A DNA stretch of 64,000 nucleotides from Macrostomum lignano (taxonomy: Eukaryota). The stretch spans positions 1,665 to 65,664 of the forward strand of contig NIVC01002911.1 in the NCBI GenBank assembly GCA_002269645.1, given 5' to 3'. Both the position numbers and the translations under genes were made by a program. Position 1 is the first letter of the stretch. The number at the start of each line of letters is the position of its first letter. This document shows, one piece after another, positions 1,544-59,056 of the stretch. The notes under the pieces were generated by a model. That model was not told where the DNA came from. It searched no databases and saw only the letters and a program-made list of their open reading frames with translations.

Positions 1544-2888
1544 CGAGGTGTATTCAAAAAGTTCTTTTCGGTGCCCTACAAAACTGAACACAAAACAACT
1601 GGAACTATGAAAACACTGTTAGATTGCTTAACATGATTCGGTCACTCAACATATTCACCGCCAATGTCTTTGCACTTCTGCCAGCGATTTACCAGGCCTC
1701 TGATTCCGGAACTCACACCACTCGCGTCCGTTTGGCGAACAGCTTGATTGCATGCAGCCTCAATGTGCTCGACGCTGTCGAATCGAATGCCCGAAGGTGC
1801 TTCTTCACAGATGGAAATAAGAAGAAGTCGCACGGCGACAAATCAGGCGAATAGGCTGGATGTTGGAGCACTTCCCATCCCCATTTGCTCAGGAGTTCCA
1901 CGACGTTGTGCTTGCGATGTGCTGGCGCATTGTCGTGCAGCAGGATCACGGCAGATTCCAGCAGATCAGGGCGCTTCTTTCGTATTGCTGGGCGCAGCTT
2001 CTCCTGCAGAATCCACTTGTAGTAGTCCCCATTGACGGTGGTTCCTTGTGGGACTGCCCAGTTCAGCAGGATTCCTTGGGAATCAAAAAACATGACGTGC
2101 ATGATCTTCATCGCGCCCTGCTTCCTGATGGCCTTCTGAGGTCTTGGAGAATGTGCTGGAAGCCATTCGGCAGACTGGGCCTTTGTCTCAGGATCCCAGC
2201 TGTAAACCCACGTCTCGTCTCCAGCTACAATTCTTGATAGAAAATCCTCCCCTTCTCGATGGAACCGACGCAGGTGGCTGCTTGAAGCCACAGTTCGCTG
2301 CATCTTTTGCTCACCTGTCAGCAGGTGTGGCACCCACTTGCAAAACTTTTTCTGCAGGTGAAGACGCTCCGTCAGAATGGTGTGGACGCTTCCTACTGAC
2401 ACACCAACGTCTTCTGCCAATTCTTCGCAAGTCCGTCGCCGATCATCATCCAGGAGCTCTTGCACTTTCTTCACAACAGTCTCGTTGGTTGCAGTCATCG
2501 GCCTTCCAGAGCGATCATTGTCCTCAACGCTCTCTCTTCCCTCAGCGAACAGCCGGTACCATTTTCGAACTGTCTGCTCAGTTGGTGCACATTTGCCAAG
2601 CACTTGCTGAAGCTCCCTAAACATATCCGGTGGCTTTTTTCCTTGCAGAAACTGAAACTTCATCAAGCTTCGAACGTCTTGCTTTGAAAATGATTCAGCC
2701 ATGGCCAAGAAATTGAGTGGTAGCTGATAGAAATGTTCGCTGCTCTAACATAGTTGCAAACTGAGACTTAAAACCCTAGGAACGTTTAGGCCATAGACAT
2801 AACTTGGTGAAATCGCTAAAATTCTGTTTACAAGGCTTTTTAAAAATAAATGCCAAAGGACCGAAAAGAACTTTTTGAATACACCTCG
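1544..2888 (-). mobile_element. Full-length mariner (Tc1/mariner DD34D) transposon, 1345 bp
   Basis: 29-bp perfect TIRs (CGAGGTGTATTCAAAAAGTTCTTTTCGGT, 1544-1572 and 2860-2888) with TA TSD at 1542-1543 and 2889-2890. Confidence 0.97.
1642..2702 (-). pseudogene. Mariner transposase with one frameshift near the C-terminus
   Basis: Motifs WVPHLL, GDETW, HDNA and YSPDLSPCD, with 34 residues between the 2nd and 3rd D. The frame shifts at ~1790 (CTTCGGGCATT, one G short of LRGIRF); the tail continues in ORF 1642-1833 to GGEYVE*. Confidence 0.93.
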
Positions 2889-5254
2889 TACAAGTTGGTT
2901 GATGGTCACTGCTTGCTGGATTGTCACAAAGAGTGCATCGACTGCAATCTAGCAAAAGATGACACCAGCTGCTTCCAGTGTCGCAATGTGCGCGTTGAAT
3001 TAAAGCATTCTATTGGTGGCAGGAGAGTCAGCAAAGTGCAGTGCTTACCAGAGTGTCCAGTTGGCTACCAACTGAGTGACAGCAAGGAAAAGCTGTGCGT
3101 GCCCTGCCAACCAGGAACTTTCAAGAACACAACGGGAAATCACCACTGCTTGTCATGCGCTCCTGGAACTTTTTCTGCATCACAAGCGACTGTGAATTGC
3201 ATGCTCTGCAGTCCAGGAAATTTCGCTTCCAAGCCAGGATCGGTACAGTGCCAGCAGTGCCATGTTGGAACAGCAAGCAGGTTTAACGGATCTGCTTCGT
3301 GTGCGGCCTGCAGTGCCGGCTTGTTCGCAGCTCAGCGAGGTCAAACGGAGTGCACTCCATGTCCAGTCGGACAGTTCAATAAAGCAGAGAGACAGGCGCA
3401 GTGCCAGTTGTGCTCTGCGGGGTCCTTCGCCGACAAGCCAGGACAGAAATCTTGCACTGCTTGCCCTGCTGGAACGTCGAGTGAGGAGGGCTCAGTGAGC
3501 TGCGCCAATAACTGCAAGAGGGGCGAGTTCAGTCCAGCCGAGGGCATCCCGTGCGCCAAGTGCCCTGCAGGCTCGTTCACTCCTAGCTCGGGATCGGTAA
3601 ATTGCACTTTGTGCTCAGCTGGCACTTTCTCCTTCAACCCAGGTAGCAGCGAGTGCTCCAAATGTCCCGCTGGCACCTACGCCAGCGAATCCGGTTCCTC
3701 AAAATGCCATGACTGCGATTTGAACTTCGCCCTAAAACGCCGAATTGGAATGGCGCACTGTGACCTATGCCCCGACTCTGGGTCTACCTTTGGCACGGAG
3801 AAATGTCACCGTAAGTAGTTGCACTTCCAATACTCTATTTACTACCTTTATATAGCTTTTATTTATTCTAAAATTTTTCAGGCAAGCTGCGCATGAGTTG
3901 CGAGGGATACCGGTACTATGATTTTTTATTAAAGGGATGTAAAAAATCTATTGATAACGATTTGAAAACGTACGGTGTACTGACATATGGCGAAGGTATA
4001 AGTAGTAAAGGCGAAGGCGGTGGTTCGCTATTTTCTCGCTATTACTACAAGTACACACTCGACCAAATTGCGTCTGTGAAAGGACTTATCAGCTGGCAAG
4101 GCGACCCAGTTGATTCTACGTCACTGGAAATCATACTAAAAGATTCTAATAAAAATCATATTAAAAATTGTAAAACTAAAGTCGATATTCTTAATCCGTA
4201 CTCAGTGCACGTGAGTGCTCTGCTTTTGACGTAAAATTCTTGGCGATTGCTATTTTCGGTGACACCTGGAAGTCGGCGGCGATCTATATCGCCGAGATTG
4301 CTCTGTATGCCGAGTAGTTCAACATTTGTCGTAAAAGCGGATATTATTCTGCAAATATAACAAACACAAGCTACTGGTTACCATTCGAAAAGTATAGTTC
4401 ATTCCTTTGTTATTATTAACAGTACAGTTTTACAGTGAAGCTTTTTGTACTGTAAGAGCCGATATAGTTTAAGACTGCAAGGGTTTTCCTGTGTTTTGGA
4501 AACCGTGAAGACCAAGGCCTGTACTGAATACCTTAATTGATTACTGCTAAAAGCACCATTGAACTGACGACTGCAAAATAGTTTTGATAAAGCTAGCGAA
4601 TCGCATACGAATAATTAGTCCAAATGACAACAGCTGTGTAGTCTTTGAGTAGAAATTGAAATTGTTCTGGCAATGTAGAAAAAAATTCGGCAGAAAGCCC
4701 ATATACTAAATTATATCGAAAAATGAAATTAAACTGCAGTAGCTAGGACAAGACCCAATAAAATGATATTAGTAAAACATTTCCTGGCATGGGACAAGAA
4801 GATTTAAAATTTGAGCTTAATTGCAGAGTTATCATCAATTAGTAATTAAACTATGCAAATTCCTTCTGGCTATACAATGAGCAGTTAGCTAATGTTTGAA
4901 CTATTTTGTATGGTATCGCTCTTTGTTTGATCAATGATCATTTAGCCAAATAAGGTTATTGGTGATCATTGTAGCGGTTGTATTGAAATTGACCAGTATA
5001 CGGTTGACAAGTATTCTTAGTTGGCAAATGGGGTTGGCTATGTACATATTGTATGTGAAACTATTGTCACAATGCCGTTGACGGTAAATATGTTCTGGAC
5101 ATTATTGGTGGTCCAAATGGGTGTCAGTTCCTCTCTTATTGGGGGCAGGCAGGTGACATTATTTATAATGCGGTTAAACATTAAAATTCTGCAATGTATG
5201 GAGAATATATTCATGGTAGTGTTTGCAGAAGTTGCGTAATCGTTTGTAAAGAGA

Positions 5255-5720: not shown

Positions 5721-6964
5721 ACGGATGGTCAGTTAGTTCCTGCCGGGCTCAGTGGGTGGTTGGGAGGGCGATGTTAGCCCCAGGCAGACTCGGGAGTCTG
5801 CATGTGATTAGCTGAGCCTTCAGTTGAGACAATGCTAGATTGCAGATTCAGGCACTCGCGGGACAAAGAGAAATCGAGAGGAAAACAATTGAAAATCTTG
5901 GTGGAAATAATTGGTTCAGGGGGGTCCATACTTATATGGTGGCAAGAATCGCATTGTAGCATTGCACGCAAGACCTCCATCGCACCAGAGCACGCAAGAT
6001 TGCGTGACACAGCTAGTAGCTGTTTTTAGAAACTGACGTCAACTTTTGCCTCGGAGAAGATTAGGGTCCCCAGACATGTGATTCTGCCATACGCATGGAC
6101 CGAACATAATGTAAAGTAAAGGTGTTTACTGTACTTTGGACTGCGAGAAAGCAGAGCCTGTCACGTGACTGGCTCACATGACAAGGGAAATAGTAGCGAA
6201 ACCACCAGTGACCACTGGACGTAGAGCGAACCAAGAGCAAGCCAAGAGCAAGGCCAAGAGCTTGTAAACCGATTTCTTTTGTTTCTTCTGGCGTTCGGCA
6301 AAGCTTGGAACTATAGCCAAACTAATTAAATTTAAATCCGGCTGGCCGGATCTAGATCAGCATATGACTGCTTCAGAAATTGAGCTTGTTCTAAAAAACA
6401 AATACAATGCATTACAAAGGCATAATTTAAGCAAAACAGCCCACAAAATTACGAGTAGTGGGCACTACAAGATATGCGATAGTGAAATTCACGATACCAA
6501 ATGTATTACTTCTACTAATCCTCGCGTAGACTTCTGTAGGATCGAACCGCGGCACACAAATACATGTAGATCTATGCGGAAAGCTTTTCCCAGCGCGTTT
6601 TTGGCAGAAAAACTCCCAACAGGTGAATCTGAATAACCCTACTGACCAAAGATTAATTGATGAAGCACAACGCGTTCGTAAAATTTTGCTGCGTGAAGGC
6701 AGGGAGGCAGAAATGTTCAGAAGTTATTAGCGATATAGCAGAGCTATATGCTGTTCCACTACTGGCCGTTATCTTTAATGCGCACGAGAAAACGGCCTGC
6801 CACTCTACAGGTGTATAAGAGACAGGAAATCCTCGCAAAAATGCCAGCTAAAGAATCATGGAGTTCTATTGCCTATAATGATCAGGAGAGGGAAACCTTA
6901 TAAGTCGAATATCATCGGTATGGATTCTGGATTTTATGTCTATAGTATCCTGCAGAATCCAGAT

Positions 6965-7850
6965 TTTATAGCTGAATCGAACTCCATGTCACTCTCTCAG
7001 AATCCAGGATAGCTAAATGGAACTCCATGTCACTCCCTCAGAATCCAACCCAGATTTGATAGCTAAATCGAACTCCATGTCACTCTCTCAGAATCCAGAT
7101 TTGATAGCTAAATGGAACTCCATGTCACTCCCTCAGAATCCAGATTTGATAGCTAAATCCAACTCCATGTCACTCTCAGAATCCAGATTTGATAGCTAAA
7201 TGGAACTCCATGTCACTCCCTCAGAATCCAGATTTGATAGCTAAATCCAACTCCATGTCACTCTCAGAATCCAGATTTGATAGCTAAATGGAACTCCATG
7301 TCACTCCCTCAGAATCCAGATTTGATAGCTAAATAGAACTCCATGTCACTCTCAGAATCCAGATTTGATAGCTAAATGGAACTCCATGTCACTCTCTCAG
7401 AATCCAGATTTGATAGCTAAATGGAACTCCATGTCACTCTCTCAGAATCCAGATTTGATAGCTAAATGGAACTCCATGTCACTCTCAGAATCCAGATTTG
7501 ATAGCTAAATGGAACTCCATGTCACTCTCTCAGAATCCAGATTTGATAGCTAAATGGAACTCCATGTCACTCTCAGAATCCAGATTTGATAGCTAAATGG
7601 AACTCCATGTCACTCTCTCAGAATCCAGATTTGATAGCTAAATGGAACTCCATGTCACTCTCTCAGAATCCAGATTTGATAGCTAAATGGAACTCCATGT
7701 CACTCTCTCAGAATCCAGATTTGATAGCTAAATGGAACTCCATGTCACTCTCAGAATCCAGATTTGATAGCTAAATAGAACTCCATGTCACTCTCTCAGA
7801 ATCCAGATTTGATAGCTAAATGGAACTCCATGTCACTCTCAGAATCCAGA
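6965..7850. repeat. Minisatellite, 43-45-bp unit (GATTTGATAGCTAAATGGAACTCCATGTCACTCTCTCAGAATCCA), ~20 copies
   Basis: Direct tandem repeat. Confidence 0.95.
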
Positions 7851-15409: not shown

Positions 15410-15802
15410 CTCCCACTTCCTCTTCTTCTCCTTCTTCTTCTCCTCCTCCTTCTTCTTCTCCTCCTTCTCCTCCTCCTCCTCCTTCTTCTTCTTCTCCTTC
15501 TCCTCCTCCTCCTCCTTCTTCTTCTCCTCCTTCTCCTCCTCCTCCTCCTTCTTCTTCTCCTCCTTCTCCTCCTCCTCCTCCTTCTTCTTCTTCTCCTTCT
15601 CCTCCTCCTCCTCCTTCTTCTTCTCCTCCTTCTCCTCCTCCTCCTCCTTCTTCTTCTCCTCCTTCTCCTCCTCCTCCTCCTTCTTCTTCTCCTCCTTCTC
15701 CTCCTCCTCCTCCTTCTTCTTCTTCTCCTTCTCCTCCTCCTCCTCCTTCTTCTTTTTCTCCTTCTCCTCCTCCTTCTTCTCCTCCTCTCTCTCTCTCTCT
15801 CT
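15410..15802. repeat. (TCC/TTC)n compound microsatellite; 3' tail or target of the outer LINE
   Basis: Abuts the LINE stop codon at 15803 directly. Confidence 0.95.
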
Positions 15803-18518
15803 TCACTCCGACCTACGGCCGCCCGCGGGTGGCCGGGCCGGGGCCGCTCTGCCACCTGGATCGTCGATAGGTGGTTCCTGGCGGCTCACCCTGCGCAGAT
15901 AATCACAGAGGAGGCTGCCCTCGCCCCCCAGCACGGTATTCCAGTCGACGCTGATGCCACCCCAGGTGCGGATGCGGGCCTGGTGGTAGCCTGAACAGGT
16001 AAGAAGCAGATGCTCGACCGAGTCCGGCTCTCCACAAGTGATGCACCGGTCGTCAGTAGTCAGGCCGAAACGGTAGAGCGTATCGCGCGTGAGCGGAGAC
16101 TTGCGCGTCCTTAGCTGGCAGAGAGTGACCTGTCCCCATCTCGGGAGGTCGTCGTGGCCAGGCGTCGGGCTCGGATGCGGGTGCATGTTATCTCGCATTC
16201 TCCGCCAACCTCGGAGGACGTGGTGGATGGCGGTCCTAGCGGCGATAGGGGCGACGGTGTTCGGTTGTTGCTGGGCTTCGGTAGCTCTTCCGGCCAGCTC
16301 ATCAGCCGCTTCGTTCCCGGGGATGTTAGCGTGTCCCGGGACCCATTGGAGATGGACTCTGCAGCCACTCGGTAGGGCAGCAATGTTGGCCCAGACACGC
16401 CGGGTGACGTCATCCGCCGCGACGGTCGGGCCACGCAGAATCGTTTGGAGGCCGGCCCGGGAGTCCGTGCACAGCCTGACAGTGATGGCCGGATTGCCGC
16501 CAGCACGGAGGGACTCGGCCAGGCGGGCCAGGGCCGCCTCGATCGCAACGAGTTCCGCACTAGTGCTACTTTGCCAGCGGCCAGCCGGCACGCAGATATC
16601 TTCATATATATTCAGGAGGTCCGAGGTAATAATAGCTCCTCCTCCAGACGCGGTGCCGTCCGGTCGGGTGGATCCATCTGTCCAGATGATCACGTCAGCC
16701 GGATGGAGGAGGCCCAGCGTCCTCTCAGCAGCCGCACGGCGGAAGTCCGGGGGGTCTGTACGGCGCGTGGCGGCGACCAGGTCGACCGCAATGGTCACCT
16801 GCTTATCCAGCCAGTGCCAAGGCGGGAGCGCAGGCTCGACAGGGCGCCTGAGGTCCTCCAGGTGGAACCCAGAGAGGTTGCATAGCCACTGTCTGACACG
16901 GCGGAAACAAGGTTTGGCGCTCAAAATGATGTCTTCGTCCCATTTCAGAATATCAACAGGTAGCCCGGGACCGACCTCGCGCTTCCAGGCTTCATGGGCC
17001 CTGCTGCGAAGGCGTGGCGGTGGCGCGGTCGACAGCAGCTGGCGCGCTGGGTCATCGTTGGGCAGGCTCATAATACGGATAAACTCATTTCCGAGGAGCT
17101 GTTTGGCGCGGAGGTGCAGTGCCGGCAGGTCCGCTTCGGCGAGCAGGGAGCGGCAGTTCGTGACACCAAGGCATCCGGTGATGATGCGCGCGCACTTGTG
17201 TTGTTCAGCTTCCAGCTTGTCCCTAAGGGTGGGCGCGGCATGGTTGAAGTAGATGGAGGCTCCGTAGTCGAACACCGACCTGATGTAGGCCGTGTAGGCG
17301 GTGCGCAGCGTAGTCCGGTGCGCGCCATAGACCTTGCCAGCGAGAGTTTGCAGGCAGCGCCGCCTAGAAGCCATCTTTTGGCGTACCGCTTCAACATGGT
17401 TAGCAAAGGTCAATTGATCGTCCAGGCGGAGGCCGAGGAACGTGGGTGCTGGATCGTACTTCAGCTCCTGGCCCTCAATGTGCAAAGTTGGGAGGACCTT
17501 TCCGCCGCATTCACTAGGATTAAGCGTGAAGGTGGTGAAAACGCATTTAGAGTGACTCATCGTCACCTTCCATTTGTTAGCCCACGCGACGACACGGTCC
17601 AATGCGGGTTGGATCTTCTCGGCGCAGGCATGTATAGATCGGCCCGTCGCCAGCAGCGCCGTGTCATCGGCGAAGAGTGACCGGTGGACACTCTCGTCGA
17701 TGTCTTGGTCGATGTCATGGACATAGATAAGCCAGAGTAGCGGCGCTATGACCGACCCCTGGGGCAGACTATCGGAAAAGACTCTCCAGTTGGAGGTCGC
17801 GTCTCCCCAGCGCACGCGAGCGCGACGATCGGATAGGAGGTTTTTGATGAAATGGATGACATGCTTGGGGACGCCAAGCCGAGCCATTTTTGCGTAGAGG
17901 GCCGGGCGCCACACTCGGTCGTAGGCCTTGGCAAAGTCCAGCAGGATAAGAATGGCGCGCTCCGGCTTTTTCTGTTCGAAAGCATCGAAAATCGCTTGGG
18001 TAATCCGCGTCAGTTGGTCCATGGTGGAGTGTCCTTTACGGAAACCTGCCTGATTGCGGTTAAGCAGGCTACGGGACTCCAGCCAAAAATACAGTCGGTT
18101 TGAAACCATACGCTCCATCAATTTCCCGACGCAGCTAAGCAGAGAGATGGGCCTGTAGGAGCTGGTAGTGCTCGCATCCTTCTCTTTTTTGAGAATAGCA
18201 ATAATCTCAGCCCGTCGCCACGCGGCAGGGACCTCGCCGGTGGCCCAACTGCGGTTGAAGAGTTCGAGGAGGGTACCTCGGCCTTGATCGCTCAGCTGTT
18301 TCAGCAGTTCGTTGTTGATGCCGTCGACCCCGGGCGATTTTCCGTTTTTGATCTGACGGATTGCCAAGTTGAGTTCAGTAGTGGTGAAGGGTGCACAGAT
18401 GTCCGATCTGAGGCCCCCGCAGGAGCAATCGCGGGTGTTAGTCGCGACATGGGCTTCAGTGATGATTTGTCTGTCGACCTCCTTATTCTTTTTGAGCCTA
18501 GAGACAGTCGCGTAATCG
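15803..18518 (-). CDS. 3' part of the element A ORF: reverse transcriptase + RNase H + Zn knuckle
   Basis: ORF 15803-18574. Its first residues (MPWALARARPKKKKK) derive from the 3' UTR/tail of element B. Confidence 0.92.
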
Positions 18519-18531
18519 GCGCAGAAAAGCT

Positions 18532-21500
18532 TCTTCTTCTTCTTCGGGCGTGCTCGAGCCAGGGCCCATGGCACCGGGCGTCAGATGGCGCCCGCCTTCC
18601 CGAGGAAGTTCAACACCGCGACGCAGTTCTCGAAAACTGCCGCGGGCTCCGGGCTTGGCCCCCAGAGGCGGCAGCGGTGTGATGTCAGGGCGGGGCAGGA
18701 GATCAGCAGATGGGCCGCCGTCTCCTCTCCATCGCCACAGAAGCGGCAGGTGGGGGCCACGTCAACGCCGATGGCGGCCTGGAAGCCCCGCAGGGCCGGG
18801 CAGCGGTCGGCGCGCAGCTGGCAGATCAGCCGCTCCTGCCGCCGCGTGAGGTCGCTTGTCGGCTGAGGCGGCAGGCGGCCCACCGTGCAGGCAAGGTGCC
18901 AGGCAAGCGAGCTCGTGCTTGCCGCCTCGGTGGCCGCCGCGTTGTAGATCTGGTGCCAGCGGGCGAGGCAGTAGCGGCGGACGGCAGCCTGCGCGGCAGC
19001 TAGCGGTACGGGCGCGGTGCCTTGCGCCAGCGTGGTGCCTTGCTTGGCGATCTCGTCCACGGCCTCGTTGCCTGGGATTCCCGCGTGGCCAGGCACCCAC
19101 TGCAGGTGGACCGAGGTTCCCCGGGCCGCGAGGTCGGCGAGGCTGCCCCAGACGGCGTCGATCATGGTGGCGCCCGTCGACCCGGGGCCGGACGCGAGCG
19201 CGCTAAGCGCGCTCAGGGAGTCGGAGCAGATGCGGACCGGCGACAGCTCTGCCGGGTCCGGGGCCGCGAGCACCCACCGAAGGGCCTCAGCGATGGCCAC
19301 TAACTCGGCGTGGAAGCTGGACGTCACATGGCCAGCAGCGACGCACAGCGTCGTGTTGGGCTCGACCAGGACGCCACTGCCGCCGTCCAGGATGCCGTCC
19401 TTCGCCGCTCCGTCGGTCCAGATCACGGTGCTGGCGGGCGGCAGGGCGGCAAGTGTCTGCTGCGCCGCGGCTCTCCGGGCCTCCGGCAGGTCCCCCCGCG
19501 AGGTTGGGGAGGCCAACTGCAGCCCGAGGGTGACAGAGTCCAGAACAGCCCAGGGAGGTGTCGTCGGGATAGCGTGGACGGGCTCTCGCGGGAAGCCGCT
19601 CAGGCCCGCAGCGCTGCATACACTGGCCGCCGTCTCGCGCCAGCCGCGGGCGCTTTGGAGGCGGCGGCGCGGGCCGACGCTGGCCGCGCAGGCGCGCAGC
19701 GGGTTGTCATGCGGCAGCCGGAGGGCGCGCTCGTGGAGGAGGCCAGCGTGCATCTCCGCGCGGACTGCCATCGGCGGCAATCCAGCCTCGCGCTCCAGCA
19801 CCTCCGACCTGGTGTTCCGTGGACACCCGGTGATGATGCGCGCGCCCAGGCGCTGGGCCCGGTCCAGGTGGTCGATAGCTGTCCTGCAGGCCGTCGGCAT
19901 CCAGGCGCCGGCAGCGTACTCCAGCACCGGCCGCACATAGGCCGTGTAGAGCTGGCGCACGTCGCTCTGCTTGGCGCCCCAGTTGCTGCCAGACAGCGCC
20001 GCCAGAACGCCGCAGCGGGCGCGGGCGCGGCCGGCGACGTTGGCGGCGTGCGCCGTGAAGCTGAGCAGCCGGTCCAGGATGACGCCGAGGAAGCGCGGCT
20101 GGCGGTCCGTCGAGAGCGGGGCGTCGTTCAGCCGCAGACGCAGCTCACGGCTGGCCTCTCCGGCGGTGGTGGTGAACAGGGAAGCGGCGCACTTGTTCGG
20201 CGCCAGCTCCATCCGCCACTCGTTCGCCCAGTCGGAGACCGCGTCGATCGCAGCCTGCGCCTTCGTCTCGGCCTCTTCCACGGTCAGGCCTTGCACTGCG
20301 ATGGCCAGGTCGTCGGCGTAGAGGAACGGCGTGCAGTCGGACGGCAGGTGGTCAGGCAGGTCGTTGATGTACAGCGCAAAGAGCAGAGGGGCAAGGACAC
20401 TCCCCTGTGGCAGGCCCTCGCGGAAGAGCCGCCAGCTGCTCAGCGCGCCGTCCACCCTGACGGCAGCGCGGCGATCGGCCAGGAAGCTGCTGACCCAGCG
20501 GACCCCGGCCGCTGGGATGCCGGCGTATTGCAGCTTGTGCAGCAGGCCCTGCTTCCAGACGGTGTCGTACGCCCGCCGGAAGTCGAACAGGACGACGACC
20601 GTCCGCCTGGCGGGGGCCGCCTGGTGGCCGTCGCTGATGAGCTGGGTGAGCCGGGCAATCTGGTCCTCGGTGCTGCGCCGCTTGCGGAAGCCGGCTTGGG
20701 CGGGGTGCAGCAGGTGCCGGGACTCGGCCCACCAGTAGAGCCGCGCTTGAACCAGACGCTCGGCCAGCTTGGCCAGAGTGGAGGTAAGGGCAATCGGCCG
20801 GTATGAGCCGATCTCGTCGGCCGGCTTGCCCTTCTTGAGGATCGGCACGATGTGGGCACGGCGCCACGCCGCGGGGACCTCCCCCTGGGTCCAGGACGCG
20901 TTGATCAGCTGCAGGACCGCCCGGCGGCCAGCGGCACCGAGGTGCTGCAGATGTTCAGCGCAGATCTCATCGGGTCCTGGGGCCTTCCTGGCCGGGAGGG
21001 AGTGGAGAGCCCTGTCCAGCTCGCGATGCGAGAACGGCTTTCCAAAGTCTCTGCTCCCATGGCTGTCGGCGCCGGCTCGCGAAACGCTGCTGCGGAAGTT
21101 CTCGCGGCGGAGGTCTCGCGTCCTGCGGTCTTGCGGGAGGCGGCTGACGGAGGCATACTCACGGGCGTAGGCCTCGGCGATGTCCTTCGACTGGACGAGC
21201 GTCTTTTGGCCCACCCGGAGCGCTGCGTCCCGCTGCAGGTTGCTGTTTCTGCCGTCGAGGGAGCGGACAATTCTCCAGATCTTGGAGTGGTCGCTGTCAG
21301 CTGCCACCTCGCCGGCGAAGGTCCTCCAGCTCTCGCGTTTGGCGTCGGCGATCGTCTTCTTGGCGTCGGCACAGGCTCGATTCCAGGCAGGCCGCACGCT
21401 CGGGTCGGCGGCGGCGGCGGCCCACGCGGCGCGGCGAGCCTTCACGGCGTCGTCGACCTCTGGCGTCCACCAGGCCTTGGCGGAGGGCCGCGCCCCGCGA

Positions 21501-21876
21501 GGGACAGACGCCTTGTCGGCTTCCTGGATGGCCGTGGTCAGCTGCTGGTTGGCCTCGCTGACCGACTCGGGCGGGCAGGCCTCCCAGCCAGCCAGGGCTT
21601 CCTCGGTCCGGGCGCGGAAACTGGCCCAGTCCGCCTTCGCCCAGGACCGCCGGGCGGCGCCCCCGCGCTTGGCCGCGCCTCGGCTGTGGATGGTGATGCA
21701 GATCGGCAGGTGGTCCGAGCCGACGTCTCCCCGGACCTGCCACTCGGCCCGGTTGGCGAGCGACTTGTGGCACAGGCTGATGTCAGGCGCCGTCTGCCGG
21801 GTGTTGGCGCGCCTCTGGAGGACCGAAAGGCCCACGAAATGCAGGTCAGCAACGGGCCTTTCCCGAGGCCCACACC
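18532..21876 (-). mobile_element. 5'-truncated Ingi/I-group-like LINE (element B, 3345 bp) nested in element A
   Basis: 13-bp TSD GCG(C/T)AGAAAAGCT at 18519-18531 and 21877-21889, (GAA)5 tail, ~35-nt 3' UTR. The ORF starts in the C-terminal end of an APE domain (PDISL...GSDHLPI). Confidence 0.92.
18581..21835 (-). CDS. Element B ORF: partial endonuclease, RT, RNase H, Zn knuckle
   Basis: Uninterrupted 1084 aa with PQGSVLAP, YADD, WTDGA, HAELVAI, SDS, WVPGH..GNEAVD and CRFC...HLLISC. Confidence 0.93.
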   Translation of the reverse strand: MGLSVLQRRANTRQTAPDISLCHKSLANRAEWQVRGDVGSDHLPICITIHSRGAAKRGGAARRSWAKADWASFRARTEEALAGWEACPPESVSEANQQLTTAIQEADKASVPRGARPSAKAWWTPEVDDAVKARRAAWAAAAADPSVRPAWNRACADAKKTIADAKRESWRTFAGEVAADSDHSKIWRIVRSLDGRNSNLQRDAALRVGQKTLVQSKDIAEAYAREYASVSRLPQDRRTRDLRRENFRSSVSRAGADSHGSRDFGKPFSHRELDRALHSLPARKAPGPDEICAEHLQHLGAAGRRAVLQLINASWTQGEVPAAWRRAHIVPILKKGKPADEIGSYRPIALTSTLAKLAERLVQARLYWWAESRHLLHPAQAGFRKRRSTEDQIARLTQLISDGHQAAPARRTVVVLFDFRRAYDTVWKQGLLHKLQYAGIPAAGVRWVSSFLADRRAAVRVDGALSSWRLFREGLPQGSVLAPLLFALYINDLPDHLPSDCTPFLYADDLAIAVQGLTVEEAETKAQAAIDAVSDWANEWRMELAPNKCAASLFTTTAGEASRELRLRLNDAPLSTDRQPRFLGVILDRLLSFTAHAANVAGRARARCGVLAALSGSNWGAKQSDVRQLYTAYVRPVLEYAAGAWMPTACRTAIDHLDRAQRLGARIITGCPRNTRSEVLEREAGLPPMAVRAEMHAGLLHERALRLPHDNPLRACAASVGPRRRLQSARGWRETAASVCSAAGLSGFPREPVHAIPTTPPWAVLDSVTLGLQLASPTSRGDLPEARRAAAQQTLAALPPASTVIWTDGAAKDGILDGGSGVLVEPNTTLCVAAGHVTSSFHAELVAIAEALRWVLAAPDPAELSPVRICSDSLSALSALASGPGSTGATMIDAVWGSLADLAARGTSVHLQWVPGHAGIPGNEAVDEIAKQGTTLAQGTAPVPLAAAQAAVRRYCLARWHQIYNAAATEAASTSSLAWHLACTVGRLPPQPTSDLTRRQERLICQLRADRCPALRGFQAAIGVDVAPTCRFCGDGEETAAHLLISCPALTSHRCRLWGPSPEPAAVFENCVAVLNFLGKAGAI

Positions 21877-23629
21877 GCGTAGAAAAGCTCGGCTTTTTGG
21901 CGGTTGGTAACAGCCTTTTTGGCCGCAGATAGCTCGGTAGCCGGCTTAGAGAAAATGGCCGCCGGGCGGGCAGATTCTAGGCGACCATCATATTGCTTGA
22001 TAAGTCTCCACAGCGAATCCTCCGGTCCAAGCGAGGCGACTGAGTCATGGAATTGTTGGCGTCTTTCCTCTCTAATGATGGTGGCAGCGGCGGCCTTAGC
22101 ATCGGCAAGGGCCGCGACAGCATCGGCGTCTTCGGGGTCGCCATGGCAACCAGCCGGGCCGCTTCTCTACTGTCGGCCGCCTCCTGGCAACGCTCGTTCC
22201 AGAAAGGGGGCCTGATGCGCTTACCGTTTCCAAAGGGGATAGAGGCTCTAGCGGCCCGGGTGATCAGATCGGTGAGGTTAGAGTTCGCCTTGTCGATGGA
22301 GAGCTGGTCACTCGCCGGGAGCCCAGCCAGAGACTTGTCAATGTGGCGGCGATAGGAGCCCCAGTCAGCTTTCTTAAAATTGTACCGGCTCTTCCCCGCT
22401 TTTTGGAAAGGAGTGGCTCTCTGCAGTAACGTGATCCAGATGGGCAGATGATCGGACCCAATGCTCGGGCCCGTGGACCAGGTCACCTTGCGGGAGAGAT
22501 CACTCGTAGCGAAAGTAATATCGGGGAAGGATTTTCCTCCGGTGGCCGGGTTAATGCGGGTACAGCTGCCGTCATTGAGGATGTCAAGGTTCAGGCGGGT
22601 GCACCATTCTTCGAGTTTGCGTCCCAGCGAGTCTTCGCGTTGGAAGGGATCCCATGCGTTGCTGTGGGCGTTGAAATCTCCGGCAACCATCGTGTGTCTA
22701 CCGACGCTAACTGCCTCTGGATTGAAGGCCGATTCCGCACTCCCGTCGCGGAGGGCGCGGGTAGCCGGTGGGACGTAGACATTAACGAGCGTAATCGGTT
22801 GACTGTTCTCCGGGAAGATGGTAATAGCGCTGCAGAAGGTCAGGTCGTCCCCCTGTTTTTGATAGGGAGATGGGAGCACTTGGAACGGGATATCATCCCG
22901 GATGAGCGTAAGAATCCCGCCTTGGTTCGGTTGGCCGGTCACTCTTCCGTCGCTCCGAAAATCAATGCGGCCGGCGAAATTGTAGTTAGTAAAACGCGGA
23001 GGGCGGGAGTCCTGGCGGAGGAAGGTTTCTTGTAGCAGGGCTGCGTGGGGTTTCTCCCGGTCCAGGACAACGGCCAGCTCAGTGGTTCTAGCTCCGATAC
23101 CGTTACAGTTAAGTTGGAGAACGACGATTCCCTTAAGGGCTGGCTGGAGGGCTTCGGATTTCGGTTTGTCTTGTGGTTTGGTGGTGGCGGTCAATTCAGT
23201 AACTCGTTTTCGCCGGTCCGTCTGCGTCAGGTTAGTCGCTGGTGGCTGCTTGGTAGCGTCATTCGGGCAGTTGCGGTTAGCTGAAGTTTCATCTTTTGGC
23301 GTTTTGTCAGCAGTCGCCGGGGCCGCAGGCTTCGTACAGGCCACACAGACCCAGCCGCCGTTCTGCTTGGCAAGTTGGTAGATCTGGTTCTTAGAGAGAC
23401 GAGCACAATTGCCGTGGGTCCAGACGAGGCAGCTGCGGCACTGCACCGCAGAGAAACTGCCCACGTTGCGTCCGCAGGAGCCACACGGCCAGGACGGGCC
23501 TGGATTTGTTTCGACGTCCCCCGCTCGCAGGATAAGGCGATCGGAGGCCAGGCAAAGAAAAGCGCAAATAAGAAACACCGTGCTGATGGGCGAGGACAGC
23601 CCCCCGAGACGGCCGGTAGAGCGGGCCAT
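21877..23629 (-). CDS. 5' part of the element A ORF: hydrophobic leader-2A, PHD finger, APE endonuclease, linker
   Basis: ATG at 23629; GDVETNPGP; C4HC3 finger CGSC...CRSC..THGNC...CVAC; APE motifs QLNCNG, LQET, NVYVP, GDFNAH, SDHLPI. After the ~22140 frameshift it continues as DPEDADAVAAL...KAELFYA. Confidence 0.88.
23495..23518 (-). other. 2A-like ribosomal skipping (StopGo) motif DVETNPG|P
   Basis: Exact D(V/I)ExNPGP consensus preceded by LILRAG, in frame between the leader peptide and the PHD finger. Confidence 0.85.
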
Positions 23630-23664
23630 GGGTGACTGTCTTTTGCTACTCGGGTGGGTGTGGC

Positions 23665-23732
23665 CGGAACAATTGGCCCGAGGGTTTACCTCGGGACACA
23701 GCCCCCGCGTGAAGGGTGTTCCGTTGGCATGC
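23665..23732 (-). ncRNA. HDV/CPEB3-like self-cleaving ribozyme fold at the 5' end of element A
   Basis: Manual fold: P1 GCAUGCC/GGC-UGU (G1.U wobble, one bulge), J1/2 AA, P2 CGGAACA/UGUUCCG, P3 CCC/GGG, L3 UUCACGC, J1.1/4 GU, P4 CCCGAGG-UAAAC-CCUCGGG, J4/2 CCAAU. G1 sits exactly at the microsatellite/element boundary. Confidence 0.8.
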
Positions 23733-23792
23733 TTCTCCTCCTCCTTCTCCTCCTCCTCCTTCTTCTTCTCCTCCTTCTCCTCCTCCTTCTTC
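23733..23792. repeat. (TCC/TTC)n microsatellite flanking the 5' end of element A
   Basis: Same repeat type as at the 3' end (15410-15802). Confidence 0.9.
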
Positions 23793-25441
23793 ATGTACCC
23801 AATTCTTCTTTACAAATTAATTTTTCACTTACAGAAACACATCCAACTAAATTTATGACTACACGACACTAGGGGAGCTTGTCGGGAAATGCTCCCCGGT
23901 GAATTGGATCGGGACCGTGGGGAGGGAAAATATTTTAAAAAAGCAGTCGTAACATAATTTTTGCCATTTAAATCAGAAAATGATCATTCACAGAAAGCTG
24001 ATTGAAACTCTGTTTGAAATAATGCAGTTAATGCAGTAAAACAGCATAAGCACAGGTTAGATAATTTTTTCAATAGGAGTCTTCAAATTTACTGCGCACT
24101 CTCAAAGGTGGCGACTTCTTAATGTTGATGAGTATACATGTATTTTGATGAGGAGCAAACATAGATGTTGTCATCATAAAACACAGCTGCGAAGTCGAAC
24201 TTATAACGTAGTTATAAGTATGCAGTTCAGCTTCATTGTGCATTGAGAGACTGATTGTTAGCGAGATCGATCATAGGGGCTAGATAAAACTCGGAATCAG
24301 CTTGGATCTTCGAATAGCGTAGATCTGCACTACCAGAGCACCGCCGTCTCTGCGCTGCATATTGCTAGCTTAGAGGAAATTTCTTGCAGCATTCGAATCG
24401 AATTTATCGAGGAGACAAGGCAAAGCGCGCATCAATATTTCTCCATCAAAATGAGACAGCTCTCTGTAATCCCGCCCAGCCCCCGTCTACCACAAGTGCC
24501 ACAAAACAGTCTGAGTTAGCGCTGAATCTGCATATTACGCGCGAAATATTCGCATTTAATTACGAGTAAGGCTATAGCATGATGTAAACACTGTACTTTT
24601 AACAAGTGCATGGCTCTACACAGTAGTGCAATCGGATTACCGACTATACAACTTGTCCGGTGCCTCTTTGAAAACCTCTTTTGACGATTTATAATACGAA
24701 CTAAAGGGAGTCAAATAACAATAGCATTAGCAATCGGGCCTGCTCGAGGTTTGTGTCTCTTCTCTCTAATCTCTCCTCCCTCCCATCTCCTTTCAACTCT
24801 CTTCTCTATTCCCTCTCGTCTAGACCGCAGTCATGCGCTAAGGTTCTCTACAGATTCTACAGTATATCTGGTCTTTAGGTTGAAAAGGCTAGCTAGCATG
24901 GTTCCATCGCATCCGCTATCCTATAGAACTGTTTAGCCATACAAGCAGGACTGAAGCCGCGTACAAGCGAACAGAGAAATGAACAAATAAATGCAGCTGG
25001 GCAAACCAGCAGGAAGTAGGGAGAGGGGATTAGTAGTAGAAGGGAAAGACAAGTTAGAAACTACAAGTTCCCTGCTTCATCTCTGCAGCAGAGAGACGAC
25101 AAGGCTATAGAAGTGGAAACAAAGGGAACTATGCAGACTGATAGAATTATCTGCTACAACTTGGATACACAAGACAGAGTTTTTCGTAGAGGCTCATATA
25201 GCACTTAAACAATAAGCCTTTTGAGGCAAGTCGAGCGGAGCGGGAGAAACAGACGGCGGGCTAATTCCCTTCGCCCACTGTTTGTCAATGACACGTTAAC
25301 TGAGCAAACTCAAGCGGCGAAAGTGGAGAGCCTAATAGACGTCGGTGAGAGAAAATTGCCTCAATCAGTCCGTCGAGCTAAAATTACCCACTCGACTCAT
25401 AGTCTTGGCAATTATGAATATAGCTCGTACTAATACTAAGG

Positions 25442-42389: not shown

Positions 42390-44230
42390 AAGCGCAATGT
42401 CAAACATAAAAGTGGCACCATGTTGAACATTAAATTAAGAGCCACAATGTTGAACATTAAAGAGCCACCATGTTTAACATTAAAGAGCCACCATGTCAAA
42501 AATAAAAGAGCCACCATGTCACACATAAAAGAGCCACCATGTCGAACATCAAAGAGCCACCATACAAAATATAAAAGAGTCACCATGCCAAACATAAAAG
42601 AGCCACTATTTCAAACATTAAAGAGCCACAATATGAGACATAAAAGAGCAACCATGTCAAATATAAAAGAGCTACCATGTCAAACATTAAAGAGCCACCA
42701 TGTAGAACATTAAAGAGCGACCACCATGTCAAACGTAAAAAAAGCCACTATGTCAAACATAAAAGCGCCACCATGTAAAACATATACGTGACTCCATGTC
42801 AAACATAAAAGAGCCACCATGAAGAACATTAAAGAGCAACTATGTCAAACAATAAAGAGCCACCTTGTCAAATATTTTAAAAGCACCATGTCAAACAATA
42901 AAGAGCCACCATGTCGAACATTAAAGAGCCACCATGTCCAACATTATAGAGCCACCATGTTGAACATTAACGAGTCACCATGTCAAGTATATTCGTGACT
43001 CCATGTCGAACATTAGAGAGCCACCATGTCGAACATTAAAGAGGCATCATGTCTAACATTAAAGAGCCACCATGTCTAACATTAAAGAGCCACCATTTCG
43101 AACATTAAAGAGCCACCATGTCTAACATTAAAGAGCCACCATGTCTAACATTAAAGAGCCACCATGTCTAACATTAAAGAGCCACCAAGTAAAAAATTAA
43201 TGAGCCACCATGTCTAACATTAAAGAGCCACCATATCTAACATTATAGAGCCACCATGCCGAACATTAAAGAGCCACCATTTCAAACATTAAAGAGTCAT
43301 CATTACATTAAGGTGCCACCAGGTCAAACATTAAAGAGCCACCATGTCTAACATTAAAGAGCCACCATGTCAAACATAAAAGAGCCACCATGTCAAACAT
43401 AAAAGAGCCACCATGTCAAACATAAAAGAGCCACCATGTCAAACATTAAAGAGCCACCATGTCAAACATTAAAGAGCCACCATGTCAAACATTAAAGAGC
43501 CACCATGTCAAACTTAAAACAGCCACCATGTCAAACATAAAAGAGCCACCATGTCAAACATATATGTGACTCCATGTCAAACAGTAAAGAGCCACCATGT
43601 CAAGCACAAAAGAGCCACCATGTCTAACATAAAAGAACCACCATGTCAACATAAAAGAGCCACCATGTCAAACATTAAAGAGCCGCAATGTCAAACATTA
43701 AAGAGCCATCATGTCTAACATTAAAGAGCCACCATGTCTAACATTAAAGAGCCACCATGTCTAACATAAAAGAGCCACCATGTCAAACATAAAAGAGCCA
43801 CCATGTCGAACATAAAAGAACCACCATGTCGAACATAAAAGAGCCACCATGTCAAACATAAAAGAGCCACCATGTCAAACATTAAAGAGCCACCATGTCG
43901 AACATTAAAGAGCCACCATGTCAAACATAAAAGAGCCACCATGTCAAACATATATGTGACTCTATGTCAAACAGTAAAGAGCCACCATGTCAAGCATAAA
44001 AGAGCCACCATGTCGAATATAAAAGAACCACCATGTCGAAAATTAAAGAGCCACCATGTCAAACATTAAAGAGCCATAATGTCAAACATTAAAGAGCCAC
44101 CATGTCGAACATTAAAGGGCCACCATGTCAAACATAAAAGTTCCCCTATGTCAAACAATAAAGAGACACCATGTCAGACATTAAAAAAACCCCGAATCAA
44201 ACATAAGAGAGCCACCATGTAGAATATAAA
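42390..44230. repeat. 23-bp minisatellite (AAAGAGCCACCATGTCAAACATT), ~80 copies
   Basis: Direct tandem repeat. Confidence 0.95.
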
Positions 44231-47180: not shown

Positions 47181-50100
47181 ATGCCTATCGAGTCGCAAAG
47201 CAGTCATACAACTGCAGAATCCGAACCGCCTTTGATTCGGAAACTTAAAAAAGTTTTAGACACTCGCCTTGAAAATGATCTTGTAAGTGATATAGGCCTA
47301 TTCGTGGTCAAGTGGTGTTAACTGTTGTGTTGTTCATGTAGACCATAGTTCGGAAGGCGACATGTATGTCGGGATTTCCTGGCATACAACAAGGATCTTA
47401 CCATTTTTAGTGTGTATATGAGGTTATTTCCCAGCATACATGACAGCAGATATACTGTGTCAAATGATAGTTTCTGTATTGGTGCACAAACCTGGCATAC
47501 AACTGAGCTGAGGTCTCATCATTTTTTGGCATTTTTGGAGTTATGGAATACAGGCCATGCCACCATAGGCCCTAGTCAAAAAGTTGGCACAGTTATAGTG
47601 ATTTTGAATTGAAGTAATTTTAATTTTGAATTTTTAAAACTATTCATCAAAAATCATTTTTGAAATGTTGATTATGTTTTAACAATTACCCATTCATGAC
47701 CATGTTACACAAGAATGCACACTGAATTATTGTCTATTTGACCTATATAAAACAGGAACTGGTAGAAAGCCTCAAAGCTGTATCAGAATTTTTCACCGAG
47801 AACAACATTCGTTCTAGACGAAGTCTTCGATCAGATATGGAAAGTCGTTATGTTGTCATCTATGAAGAATTTCTGCACTCATTTAAATCTGTCAAGGATG
47901 TAAGGCATTGACTGATTTATTGGTATTTATGCAGACTTTAGAGAAGCTTTTAGACTCTGGTGTAGTAATGGCCCATGGGTTAAAATCATAGACCTCACCT
48001 GACCCTGGGATTTGACTCATTGACCTACTTACCTGACCCTGAGATTTGACTCATTGACCTACTTACCTGACCCTGGGATTTGACTCATTGACCTACTTAC
48101 CTGACCCAGAGATTTGACTCACTGACCTACTTACCTGACCCTGGGATTTGACTCATTCACCTACTTACCTGACCCAGAGATTGATTCATTGACCTACTTA
48201 CCTGACCCTTGGATTTGACTCATTGCCCTACTTACCTGACCCAGAGATTTGACTGATTGAACTACTTACCCGACCCTGGGATTTGACTGATTGACCTACT
48301 TACTTACCTGACCCTTGGATTTGACTTATTAACCTACTTACCTGACTCTGGGATTTGACTCGTTGACCTACTTACGAGGGGCACTATTAAAGTTCTGAGC
48401 CTTAATATGAAAGAGAGGAGATATGGGCAAAGTGAGATCAGCTTTTCTCAACATAGTCTCCCCCAACCAAGATGCACTTATGGCATCTTGATCGCAGCGC
48501 CTCAATGCCACTCTGGAAGAATTGCACCGAGCAGCCCTCAAACCAAGCAGTTGCAGCATCCTTCAGCGCATCATCAGTGTCAAATCGCTGTCCACGGAGC
48601 GCCCGCTTGAGATGTGGAAACAGGTGGAAGTCGCTCGGGGCCAGGTCTGGTGAATAGGCTGGGTGCGGCAGCTCTCGAAACCCTGCGACACTGACAGCAG
48701 CCTTGGCAATCCTGCTAGTGTGGGCCGGTGCATTGTCGTGCAGCAGCACAACACCTCGGCTCAGCATCCCTCGCCTATTTTCCTTGATTGCTTCGCGCAG
48801 ACGGGCGATCAGGTCAGCGTAGTAGGCGCCTGTGACTGTCTGCTTGTGCGGTAGAAAGTCCAGCAGCAGCGGGCCCTTGGCATCCCAGAAGACGGTGAGC
48901 ATAATCTTGCCCGCACTGCATGCAGTCCGTGCCTTCAGTGGTGCAGGTGAACCAACTGGCAGCCACTGCTTGGACTCCTGCTTGGACTCGGGATCGTGGT
49001 GATGGATCCACGTCTCATCCCCGGTCACGCAGCAGGACAGAAAGTTGGCAGGGTCCGGATCGTAGGAGTCCAGGACAAGCTTTGAGTACTGCACCCGTGC
49101 GGTCTTTTGGTCCCTTGTCAAGATTCGTGGGATCCATCTGGCAGAAACCTTGGACAGATGAAGATGCTGGTGCAGGATCTCAATGACTTGCGGGTCAGAG
49201 AGTCCAGTGTCTGCCGCAAGTTCCCTGACTTTCACCCGCTGGTCACTGTCAACCAGAGCCTGGATGCGCTGGATGTTGTCGGCAGTGACAGCAGTCCGGG
49301 GTCGTCCACATCGGGGGTCATCTTCGAGCGAGTCGCGGCCACGCTTGAACTCGGCTGCCCAGCGCTTTATGGTGGCGTATGAGGGGGCAGCGTCAGCGTA
49401 CACACTAGCCATGCGGCTTTGAATTTCAGCAGGCTTTGAGCCCTCCAGAGTCAGAAATTTAATCACTGCCCTGTGCTCAAGCTTCAATTCTTGAGAAAAT
49501 GCCATGGGGTGCTGGAAATAAAATGGTGCAGTGGGACTTAGGGAATGCAGAAAATTCTGAAAAGTTGACAATAGACTATTAACATGTGGCGCTTTTAGAG
49601 CCTAAAGTTTCAACACTTTGCCACTATAAGATCTTGGTCAGGCTCAGAACTTTAATAGTGCCCCTCGTACTTGACCCTAGGATTCGACTCGCTTACCTAC
49701 CTTCCTGACCCTTGGATTTGACTCATTGACCTACTTACCTGACCCTGAAATTTGACTCATTGACCTACTTACCTGACCCTGAAATTTGACTCATTGACCT
49801 ACTTACCTGACCCTGGGATTTGACTCATTGACCTACTTACCTGACCCTGGGATTTGACTCATTGACCTACTTACCTGACCCGGAGATTTGACTCATTGAC
49901 CTACTTACCTGACCCTGGGATTTGACTCATTGACCTACTTACCTGACCCTGGGATTTGACTCATTGACCTACTTACCTGACCCGGAGATTTGACTCATTG
50001 ACCTACTTACCTGACACTGGGATTTGACTCATTGACCTACTTACCTGACCCAGAGATTTGACTCATTGACCTACTTACCCGACCCTGGGATTTGACTCAT

Positions 50101-58273: not shown

Positions 58274-59056
58274 ATGGCATCGGCCGCTTTAGCCTCATCC
58301 CCACCAGATGGCTCAGCCGCAGATCCCCAGAAGATCATCCGCAGAAATCTGCCCGGCACCAGCCGAGCAAAATGGAGCAATTGGCCAGACCAGAGCTTCG
58401 ACGAGATGGACTCCACCCTGACTGTGCAGCAGTACATTCAACAGCTGACTAAAGCCGATCCGTCTAATGTTGATCTGATTCTGAACCCTCCCGAAGGTCA
58501 GGACATCAACGTGTGGAAATACGAACACCTCAGACAGTTCTGTATGGAGTTGAACGGCCTGGCTGTCCGGCTGCAAGCCGAATGCCGACCGGACGTGTGC
58601 AGTCAGATGACGGCCACTGAGCAGTGGATCTTCCTGTGCGCCGCCCATCGCACGCCGATGGAGTGCTCGGCCATAGACTATACCAGACACACCCTTGACG
58701 GGGCGGCCTGCCTACTCAATAGTAGTAAATATTTCCCTAGCCGGGTCAGCATTAAGGAGGCCAGTATTGGCAAACTGGCCAGCATCTGTCGCAGGGTCTA
58801 TCGTGTGTTTTCGCACGCCTATTTTCATCACCGAGGCGTATTTGACGCATTCGAAGAGGAGACCTACTTGTGCAGACGATTTACCGTGTTTGTGATGAAA
58901 TACCAGCTGATGACTAAGGAGATTCTTATTGTACCGGTGTTAGAGGAATTGGGCCTTGGCAACGAATCCACTGTTGGCGATTCAACTGTCAGCGCCTCTA
59001 GCGGGTCTCCAGCTAGCAAAGGCGAATCAAGTTCTGCTAGTGAAACGGAAGCTTAA
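58274..59056 (+). CDS. MOB4: MOB family member 4 / phocein (STRIPAK component), intronless, 260 aa
   Basis: [99 protein letters not shown]. Confidence 0.97.

Follow-up and report, generated by a model that had tools for sequence, protein, structure and literature searches.

HDV-like ribozymes are defined by a nested double pseudoknot and by the position of a catalytic cytosine in J4/2 (PMC10879173). The presence of such ribozymes at the 5' ends of LINEs is established for a number of elements (viz. R2, R4, Dong, baggins, and L1Tc), as a preliminary description of the present locus had stated for L1Tc/ingi, R2, and several other LINEs, and the corresponding reports describe them as cutting the junction at which the element begins (PMC3774820, PMC3185411, PMC6765202). 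A further group of LINEs is characterized by a 2A-PHD-APE layout, in which a 2A sequence is located 40-80 aa from the N-terminus and is followed by a PHD finger and an APE domain, with no ORF1 (PMC3708506). In the present work, we have analysed a stretch of DNA of 64,000 nucleotides (hereafter, the window), in which positions 23732-23665 of the minus strand are quite likely to constitute the 5'-terminal HDV-like ribozyme of a single-ORF LINE of ~4.6 kb, for which self-cleavage is predicted. Since HDV-like ribozymes at the 5' ends of LINEs are already established, the novelty of this locus lies in a new family and not in a new principle.

The minus strand from 23732 to 23665 reads in every segment as the preliminary description had written it, and the strand order P1-P2-P3-L3-P3'-P1'-(P1.1)-P4-J4/2-P2' is followed both in the window and in six relatives that are described below (Table 1). 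Direct reading likewise confirms that P2 (CGGAACA/UGUUCCG) and P4 (CCCGAGG/CCUCGGG) are both perfect 7-bp helices, and the J4/2 sequence CCAAU agrees with the C-N-A-A type that had been claimed for it. The P1 helix of the window comprises six pairs (G.U, C-G, A-U, G-C, C-G, and C-G), the first of which is the G23732.U wobble pair that had been noticed at the predicted cut site, and these six pairs form only if U23729 is bulged out. A G in J1/4 pairs with the third base of L3 (C3) and this pairing forms P1.1. The (GAG/GAA)n microsatellite stops at A23733 and the element sequence starts at the next base, G23732, so that the microsatellite ends exactly at the predicted cut site, as had been proposed; the first in-frame ATG (23629-23627) lies 103 nt downstream, in good agreement with the distance of about 100 nt given earlier.

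Table 1. Positions in the window of the predicted ribozyme and of the LINE that carries it, including the LINE nested within it
Feature	Positions	Strand	Remarks
(GAG/GAA)n microsatellite, host-side flank ending at the predicted cleavage site	23733..23794	-	TRF 23735-23792
P1 5' strand, GCAUGCC	23726..23732	-	Predicted cut 5' of G23732; U23729 extra, bulged
J1/2, AA	23725-23724	-	
P2 5' strand, CGGAACA	23717..23723	-	
P3, CCC/GGG around L3 UUCACGC	23704..23716	-	
P1 3' strand, GGCUGU, and J1/4, GU	23696..23703	-	GGCUGU 23703-23698; GU 23697-23696
P4 hairpin, CCCGAGG-UAAAC-CCUCGGG	23677..23695	-	
J4/2, CCAAU	23672..23676	-	C23676, candidate catalytic cytosine
P2 3' strand, UGUUCCG	23665..23671	-	
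ATG, short leader, and predicted 2A/StopGo motif	23495..23629	-	ATG 23629-23627; motif ASDRLILRAGDVETNPGP at 23548-23495
PHD-type zinc finger	23336..23485	-	PF00628, E = 1.3e-4, just under cut-off; conserved Cys/His columns
APE endonuclease domain of the ribozyme-bearing LINE	22439..23119	-	Pfam
Post-APE linker with frameshift (~22154-22079)	21877..22154	-	Ends in target-site duplication copy 1, AGCTTTTCTACGC, 21889-21877
Nested 5'-truncated LINE B of a different family	18530..21876	-	APE tail, RT, RNase H, zinc finger; (GAA)5 end
Ribozyme-bearing LINE, second part (C)	15803..18531	-	Target-site duplication copy 2 at 18531-18519
Domains of C: RT; RNase H; zinc knuckle; stop codon	18187-17474; 16696-16280; 16108-15992; 15805-15803	-	
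3' tail or flank, (GA)n then (GAG/GAA)n	15416..15802	-	Directly after the stop codon

Downstream of the ribozyme, three long ORFs are present on the minus strand (A, 23629-21977; B, 21835-18581; and C, 18574-15803), and comparison with Pfam identifies PHD and APE domains in A and the combination of RT, RNase H, and zinc finger in both B and C. When these ORFs are placed on three related guide proteins, A corresponds to residues 1 to ~410 and C to the residues from ~409 on, and the identity to the guides is 56-60% for C and 37-39% for B. A 13-nt repeat, AGCTTTTCT(A/G)CGC, is found on both sides of B (21889-21877 and 18531-18519), and the removal of B with one copy of this repeat joins A and C in frame (...KAELFYADYATVSRLKKNK...) in a manner that matches the guides. 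Because A and C abut on the guides and join in frame, they represent one LINE of ~4.6 kb, into which B, with a GC content of 0.69, is inserted. A single contiguous LINE extending from 23732 to 18581 was also considered and is ruled out by the identities of A with B (34% over their APE tails) and of B with C (36%), as well as by the in-frame joining of A and C. The preliminary description had spoken of an RNase H-bearing LINE, which is correct in that the ribozyme-bearing element has an RNase H of its own (16696-16280), but this LINE is not contiguous and the RNase H nearest to the ribozyme belongs to the intruder B. What seems to be a single LINE in the window is a nested pair, and this is of relevance for its annotation. 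The order of features in the reconstructed ORF is leader, 2A, PHD, APE, RT, RNase H, and zinc knuckle, followed by the (GAR)n tail, and the element is placed inside a (GAR)n microsatellite within AT-rich host DNA; tails of the (GAA)n type, viz. (GAA)5-8, are also present in the relatives L002, L083, L084, and L085. A second instance of LINE-in-LINE nesting was observed in a metagenome sample at the locus L088 (5300-5720), where a 5'-truncated L085-like LINE that lacks a ribozyme abuts the APE end of a different LINE.

Protein searches of ENA and JGI metagenome assemblies, including Tara samples, have identified related LINEs that are 40-47% identical in APE. The same fold is present 190-390 nt upstream of the 2A NPGP in six of these related LINEs (viz. 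L001, L002, L083, L085, L086, and L087), which come from marine metagenomes (three ENA samples and one JGI sample). Their P1 and P2 helices, respectively, are GCCACC/GGUGGC and CGGAGCA/UGCUCCG in L001, GCCUUC/GAAGGC and GGGAGC/GCUCCC in L002, GGCGUC/GACGCU and UGGAGC/GCUCCA in L083, GC-ACC/GGUGGC and CGACGA/UCGUCG in L085, GGUUGUC/GACAACC and GGUGC/GCACC in L086, and GGUUGUG/GACAACC and GGUGC/GCACC in L087. The P1 of L085 is one base short, and in L087 the uppermost position of P1 is a G.G and the conserved C is preceded by a U. In L083, L3 is UGCACGU and J1/4 is GC; in L086 and L087, P3 consists of GCC/GGC instead of CCC/GGG; and P4 is a different stable hairpin in each copy. No ribozyme was found in L088 and L089, which are 5'-truncated or decayed, and L090 was left out of the comparison because its contig upstream of the 2A is too short to reach the ribozyme region. 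None of 80 distant loci from the metagenome scan has this exact fold; several of them have a 2A and possibly a divergent ribozyme.

The covariation among family copies that the preliminary description had suggested looking for is present in these sequences. The test was carried out on an alignment (A5) of seven sequences, in which P1, P1.1, P2, and P3 were written as a pseudoknot; L086 and L087 are close relatives, and the columns of P2 and P3 derive from a structure-fitted alignment. In this alignment, 86.6% of the paired cells are observed to pair, compared with 71% after shuffling and 36-56% when the partners are slid, and 10 of the 17 pairs show compensatory changes on both sides; the observed values were reached by none of 500 shuffles. 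Four of the six pairs of P1 are compensatory, though P1 was left unpaired in the model that built the alignment. P2 shows double changes in four of its six pairs with 88% of its cells paired, whereas in P3 one of the three pairs switches from C-G to G-C and all cells (100%) are paired. The P1.1 pairing of L3 C3 with the J1/4 G is in register in five of the seven sequences and is offset by 1 nt in L086 and L087 as a result of their 7-bp P1; in L083, a G at the second position of L3 and a C at the second position of J1/4 are able to pair, which constitutes a compensatory change. The L3 positions U1, C3, C5, and G6 are invariant in the seven sequences and the J1/4 G is conserved. The column at the start of J4/2, which corresponds to C23676 in the window, is a C in all seven sequences (one base separates it from P4 in L086 and L087), and since this invariant C occupies the site of the catalytic cytosine in HDV-like ribozymes, it is a candidate for the catalytic base (PMC10879173).

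Two covariance models were constructed from these sequences, model R1 from the first six sequences and a leave-one-out model, model R2, from the six relatives without the window. When the 64 kb were searched with the leave-one-out model with filters off, the only significant match was located at 23736-23660 (-), with a score of 42.1 bits and an E-value of about 1e-7. L087, which was fetched after model R1 had been built, was scored by this model at 52.8 bits (E = 5e-13). The HDV-type double pseudoknot that had been proposed for this locus is thus upheld both by covariation in seven family members and by a model that recovers the site without having been built from it. Across 410 kb of loci, model R1 gave no further significant match (all others had E > 0.2), and no further copies of the ribozyme were found in the window by exact or 3-mismatch search or by model R1 with filters off. 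The Rfam covariance models, which the preliminary description had recommended as a check, did not detect the fold: no HDV or CPEB3 match was obtained in the 64-kb window at the gathering score, and none at E <= 10 in 23500-23900 or in L001, L086, and L087. As the Rfam models also miss intact relatives, their silence reflects the narrowness of the models and not a missing fold, and this result excludes membership of the curated HDV/CPEB3 families but not an HDV-like fold. An exact look-up of the window ORF in public assemblies found no record.

The position of the ribozyme at the 5' boundary of the element is indicated most directly by L002, in which the element is flanked by a 14-nt target-site duplication, AGATCGGGGGTGGC, with one copy that precedes P1 and extends 2 nt into this helix and the other immediately behind the (GAA)n tail. 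A target-site duplication was not found for L083 and L085. The upstream flanks of the seven copies show similarity at the level of shuffled sequences in nearly all pairs, and for the pair L086/L087 the similarity score is 47 from P1 onward compared with 6 upstream. The target-site duplication of L002 and the unrelated upstream flanks place the ribozyme at the exact 5' end of the LINE, as had been proposed, and no 5' ends extending well upstream of it were seen among the metagenome relatives. The upstream flank of L002 (1690-1740) also contains a local tandem duplication (cggcggagatcgggggtga...) that includes the sequence of the target-site duplication.

The predicted 2A of the window has the C-terminal motif GDVETNPGP at 23521-23495, and its position is kept in the relatives. 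A 2A/StopGo motif of the form D[VI]ExNPGP is present near the N-terminus in 22 loci of this LINE group, including the window, the six ribozyme-bearing relatives, and 11 further loci, and a PHD finger follows the 2A in the window, L001, L083, L085, and L086. In five of the seven copies, no stop codon interrupts the reading frame between the predicted cleavage site and the 2A, and L001 (129-320), L002 (1740-1960), and L086 (60-350) lack an in-frame AUG in this interval. These observations provide hints, at the level of sequence, of an AUG-independent initiation of translation, in which the leader would be removed by the 2A.

Two other observations concern the region upstream of the 2A. The first is an in-frame box, [GC]G[GT]GTTTTY (peptide G/V-F), which is found in the window at ~23578-23571 (-) and in 18 of the 22 loci bearing a 2A, at a fixed distance of 72-78 nt (or, in one lineage, 123-129 nt) upstream of the NPGP Asn codon; this box may represent the start of the part of the 2A that interacts with the tunnel, or else an RNA signal. 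The second concerns another lineage of 2A-bearing LINEs (L004, ~460-560; L007, ~30-190; and L010, ~3395-3520), in which a CAGGATC sequence, directly adjoined by an (AAC)n microsatellite in L004 and L010, is followed at 40-75 nt by its complement (GATCCTG or GGTCCTG). This complement is preceded in L004 by a CCC-TTATCGC-GGG hairpin, and the region of this lineage also contains an ACGAAT motif and the conserved sequence ACAATTGGGGA(A/T)GCTCTGCAC. This region of the second lineage is probably a divergent HDV-like ribozyme in which P2 and P3 are separated by an insert.

The conservation of this region could have causes other than self-cleavage. It is conceivable, but unlikely, that the region is a structured 5' leader whose main role is a different one (viz. 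as a Pr77-like internal promoter, an IRES-like element, or a protein-binding site) and which does not cleave itself. Promoter, IRES, or protein-binding roles have been reported in L1Tc and R2 (PMC3383444, PMC6765202), the open frame in five of the seven copies and the three relatives that are AUG-less before the 2A point to a role in translation, and the silence of the Rfam HDV-like models would also be in keeping with such a leader. However, in the known cases these roles are additional to cleavage and do not replace it, and all features of the HDV-type catalytic core (viz. P1 at element base 1, the P1.1 G-C, L3 U1/C3/C5/G6, and the C at the start of J4/2) are present and conserved. The covariation of P1 and its start exactly at the boundary of the element are, moreover, hard to explain unless the RNA is cut there.

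It is very improbable that the conservation arises from coding constraint on an N-terminal peptide translated through the region rather than from RNA structure. Most copies have no stop codon in frame across the ribozyme, and in five of the seven a similar peptide, P-(F/S)-(T/S)-R-G, is specified by the L3/P3 core; however, outside the L3/P3 core the peptides are unrelated, the pairing in P1, P2, and P4 is maintained by double substitutions, and the frame that runs through the region is a different one in L086 and L087.

With regard to chance, a loose descriptor that lacks P4 finds matches in 12% of 300 dinucleotide-shuffled windows. The full descriptor (L3 motif, P3, P1 of 6-7 bp or with one bulge, P2 of at least 6 bp, and a P4 hairpin in place) is matched in 9 of 1000 shuffles (0.9%), and in the real window it is matched only by the site at 23732-23665. 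The fold of minimum free energy of the ribozyme region is unremarkable (z = -1.1), this being a nested-only fold for which pseudoknots are outside the model. Because the fold of the window copy alone is only moderately above chance, the deciding evidence is its conservation in the relatives. The view that complementary segments of a GC-rich LINE came to be so arranged by chance, for which the matches of the loose descriptor, the bulge required by P1, and the unremarkable z-score could be cited, is barely credible, as it is already contradicted by the rarity of the full descriptor in shuffles, the recurrence of the fold, with compensatory changes, at the equivalent position of six relatives, the score of L087, and the leave-one-out model, which matches only this site. 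An HDV-like ribozyme at the 5' end of the LINE is thus the reading that we prefer.

The copy in the window departs from its family in P1, where the single bulge claimed in the preliminary description is indeed found, but its origin is better explained in a different way. Perfect P1 helices of 6-7 bp, which covary, are present in L001, L002, L083, and L086, and in four intact relatives a six-base P1 3' strand is followed by G(U/G/C). The earlier suggestion that an A is missing from the P1 3' strand was rejected, as GGCUGU followed by GU in the window has the standard length of the family. It is the 5' strand that has seven bases, and an extra U23729 in that strand is therefore more parsimonious. 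The P1 duplex energy of the window is -5.0 kcal/mol as found, -8.8 kcal/mol without U23729, and -9.9 kcal/mol with the A that had been suggested, compared with -7.3 to -10.2 kcal/mol in the five relatives that have an uninterrupted P1; the extra U23729 weakens the P1 of the window by about 4 kcal/mol. According to one study, mismatches in P1 are uncommon in HDV-like ribozymes and are tied to the loss of activity in vitro (PMC3774820). Cleavage by the ribozyme of the window copy itself is probably impaired, and on the basis of its weakened P1, the nested LINE, and the frameshift, we read this copy as a dead, decayed relic.

Upstream of the LINE and on the same strand, the window contains symplekin exons (38194-26956) with the N- and C-terminal domains of this protein (38194-37385 and 27654-26956, -), and the ORF of the C-terminal domain ends ~3.2 kb before the microsatellite. 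The best protein matches of the symplekin fragment are 41% and 35% identical to it, and the host is a eukaryote with few close sequences in the protein database. The symplekin gene is a possible source of read-through transcription. The other coding content of the window consists of an Ephrin-receptor-like cysteine-rich repeat protein, a COG6 C-terminal fragment, and a Mob1/phocein protein (2850-3818, 54514-55080, and 58274-59056, respectively; all +) and two mariner/Mos1-type transposases (1713-2708 and 48438-49571; both -). Minisatellite arrays with periods of 16-45 bp are unusually dense in the window (e.g. 60174-64000, 42397-44220, 52035-53046, 56950-58175, and 6953-7850), examples being an array of 191 copies of a 20-mer, which continues past the end of the window, and one of 79 copies of a 23-mer.

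By analogy with the established LINE ribozyme systems (viz. R2, Dong, baggins, and L1Tc), the following mechanism may be proposed for this family. The element, which may be independent of a promoter, would be transcribed within a longer read-through RNA, the symplekin gene being upstream on the same strand in the window. The double pseudoknot would then fold, with C23676, the first base of J4/2, catalysing scission 5' of G23732, and the 5' end of the resulting RNA, a 5'-OH, would coincide with element base 1. Once folded, the ribozyme may additionally aid cap-independent translation, as proposed for R2 and L1Tc (PMC6765202), a step with which the open frame in five of the seven copies and the lack of an AUG in L001, L002, and L086 are consistent. 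The 2A would separate the PHD-APE-RT-RNase H protein from any leader peptide translated ahead of it, and the (GAA)n-type tail would prime reverse transcription at GAR-rich targets.

A broader and more tentative possibility is that the 5' HDV-like ribozyme and the N-terminal 2A make up one conserved expression cassette, independent of both cap and AUG, in RNase H LINEs well beyond L1Tc/ingi. If this is true, the ribozyme of single-ORF RNase H LINEs would both set RNA base 1 and attract ribosomes, initiation would take place independently of an AUG, and the variable leader would be removed by means of the 2A. A derivation of the mammalian CPEB3 ribozyme from the 5' end of a LINE would, if true, also be compatible with a CPEB3-like core in these LINEs. 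Independently of this possibility, the present work adds a well-supported and uncatalogued family of HDV-like ribozymes, which is missed by the Rfam models and is tied to 2A-PHD-APE-RT-RNase H LINEs in this genome and in marine metagenomes. It brings together predicted 5' self-cleavage and 2A StopGo, which were previously described together only for the trypanosomatid L1Tc/ingi elements, and the intact relatives, AUG-less copies included, provide material for testing the ribozyme and the 2A as a unit. The ribozyme also serves as a precise marker of full-length 5' ends for these LINEs.

The host element of this ribozyme is, like the hosts of the described LINE ribozymes, a non-LTR retrotransposon, with an APE and an RT of its own (Pfam) and with A and C contiguous across the nested insert. 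The likeness to R2 comprises a 5' HDV-like fold that cleaves the co-transcript, a P1 of 6-7 bp, a P2 of at least 5 bp, a variable P4, and few invariant core bases, and an IRES-like role and AUG-less ORFs are also reported there (PMC3774820, PMC6765202). In contrast to the present element, which is of the APE type, R2 has a REL-type endonuclease and inserts into 28S rDNA; R2 often cuts upstream in 28S, whereas the cut predicted here is at the first base of the element itself, and the J1/2 of R2 is often huge, whereas the present J1/2 consists of 2 nt. Dong, of the R4 clade, resembles the present element in being a LINE in a microsatellite with a 5' HDV-like ribozyme that cuts the junction between microsatellite and element (PMC3774820). 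It differs in its LINE clade and type of endonuclease and in its microsatellite, (TAA)n in Dong and (GAR)n here, and no 2A is reported for Dong.

The mammalian CPEB3 ribozyme has the L3 sequence UUCACGU, a J1/4 of GU, a 6-bp core P1, a 7-bp P4, and a J4/2 of the C-N-A-A type. The present family appears to be similar to it, with L3 UUCACGY, J1/4 G(U/G/C), and J4/2 C(C/A)A(A/G); however, CPEB3 is a single-copy intronic element in mammals and not the start of a LINE, and the Rfam CPEB3 model gives no match here. The 2A-PHD-APE single-ORF LINEs of the Crack, CR1, Rex1, L2, and Ingi clades (Odon et al., 2013) share the layout of the present element, although their description makes no mention of ribozymes (PMC3708506). 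In L1Tc/ingi, as in the present element, a ribozyme lies within the 5'-terminal ~70-80 nt of a LINE that has a single APE-RT-RNase H ORF and an N-terminal 2A, and a release of the element from longer transcripts has been proposed for L1TcRz as it is here (PMC3185411, PMC3383444, PMC4035085, PMC3708506). This likeness concerns the described traits (viz. 2A, single ORF, and RNase H), and the present LINE differs from L1Tc in having a PHD finger between the 2A and the APE, a (GAA)n tail, and a microsatellite setting. The present host, moreover, looks non-trypanosomatid, as indicated by its symplekin, Mob1, and COG6 genes and by the marine metagenome relatives of the element.
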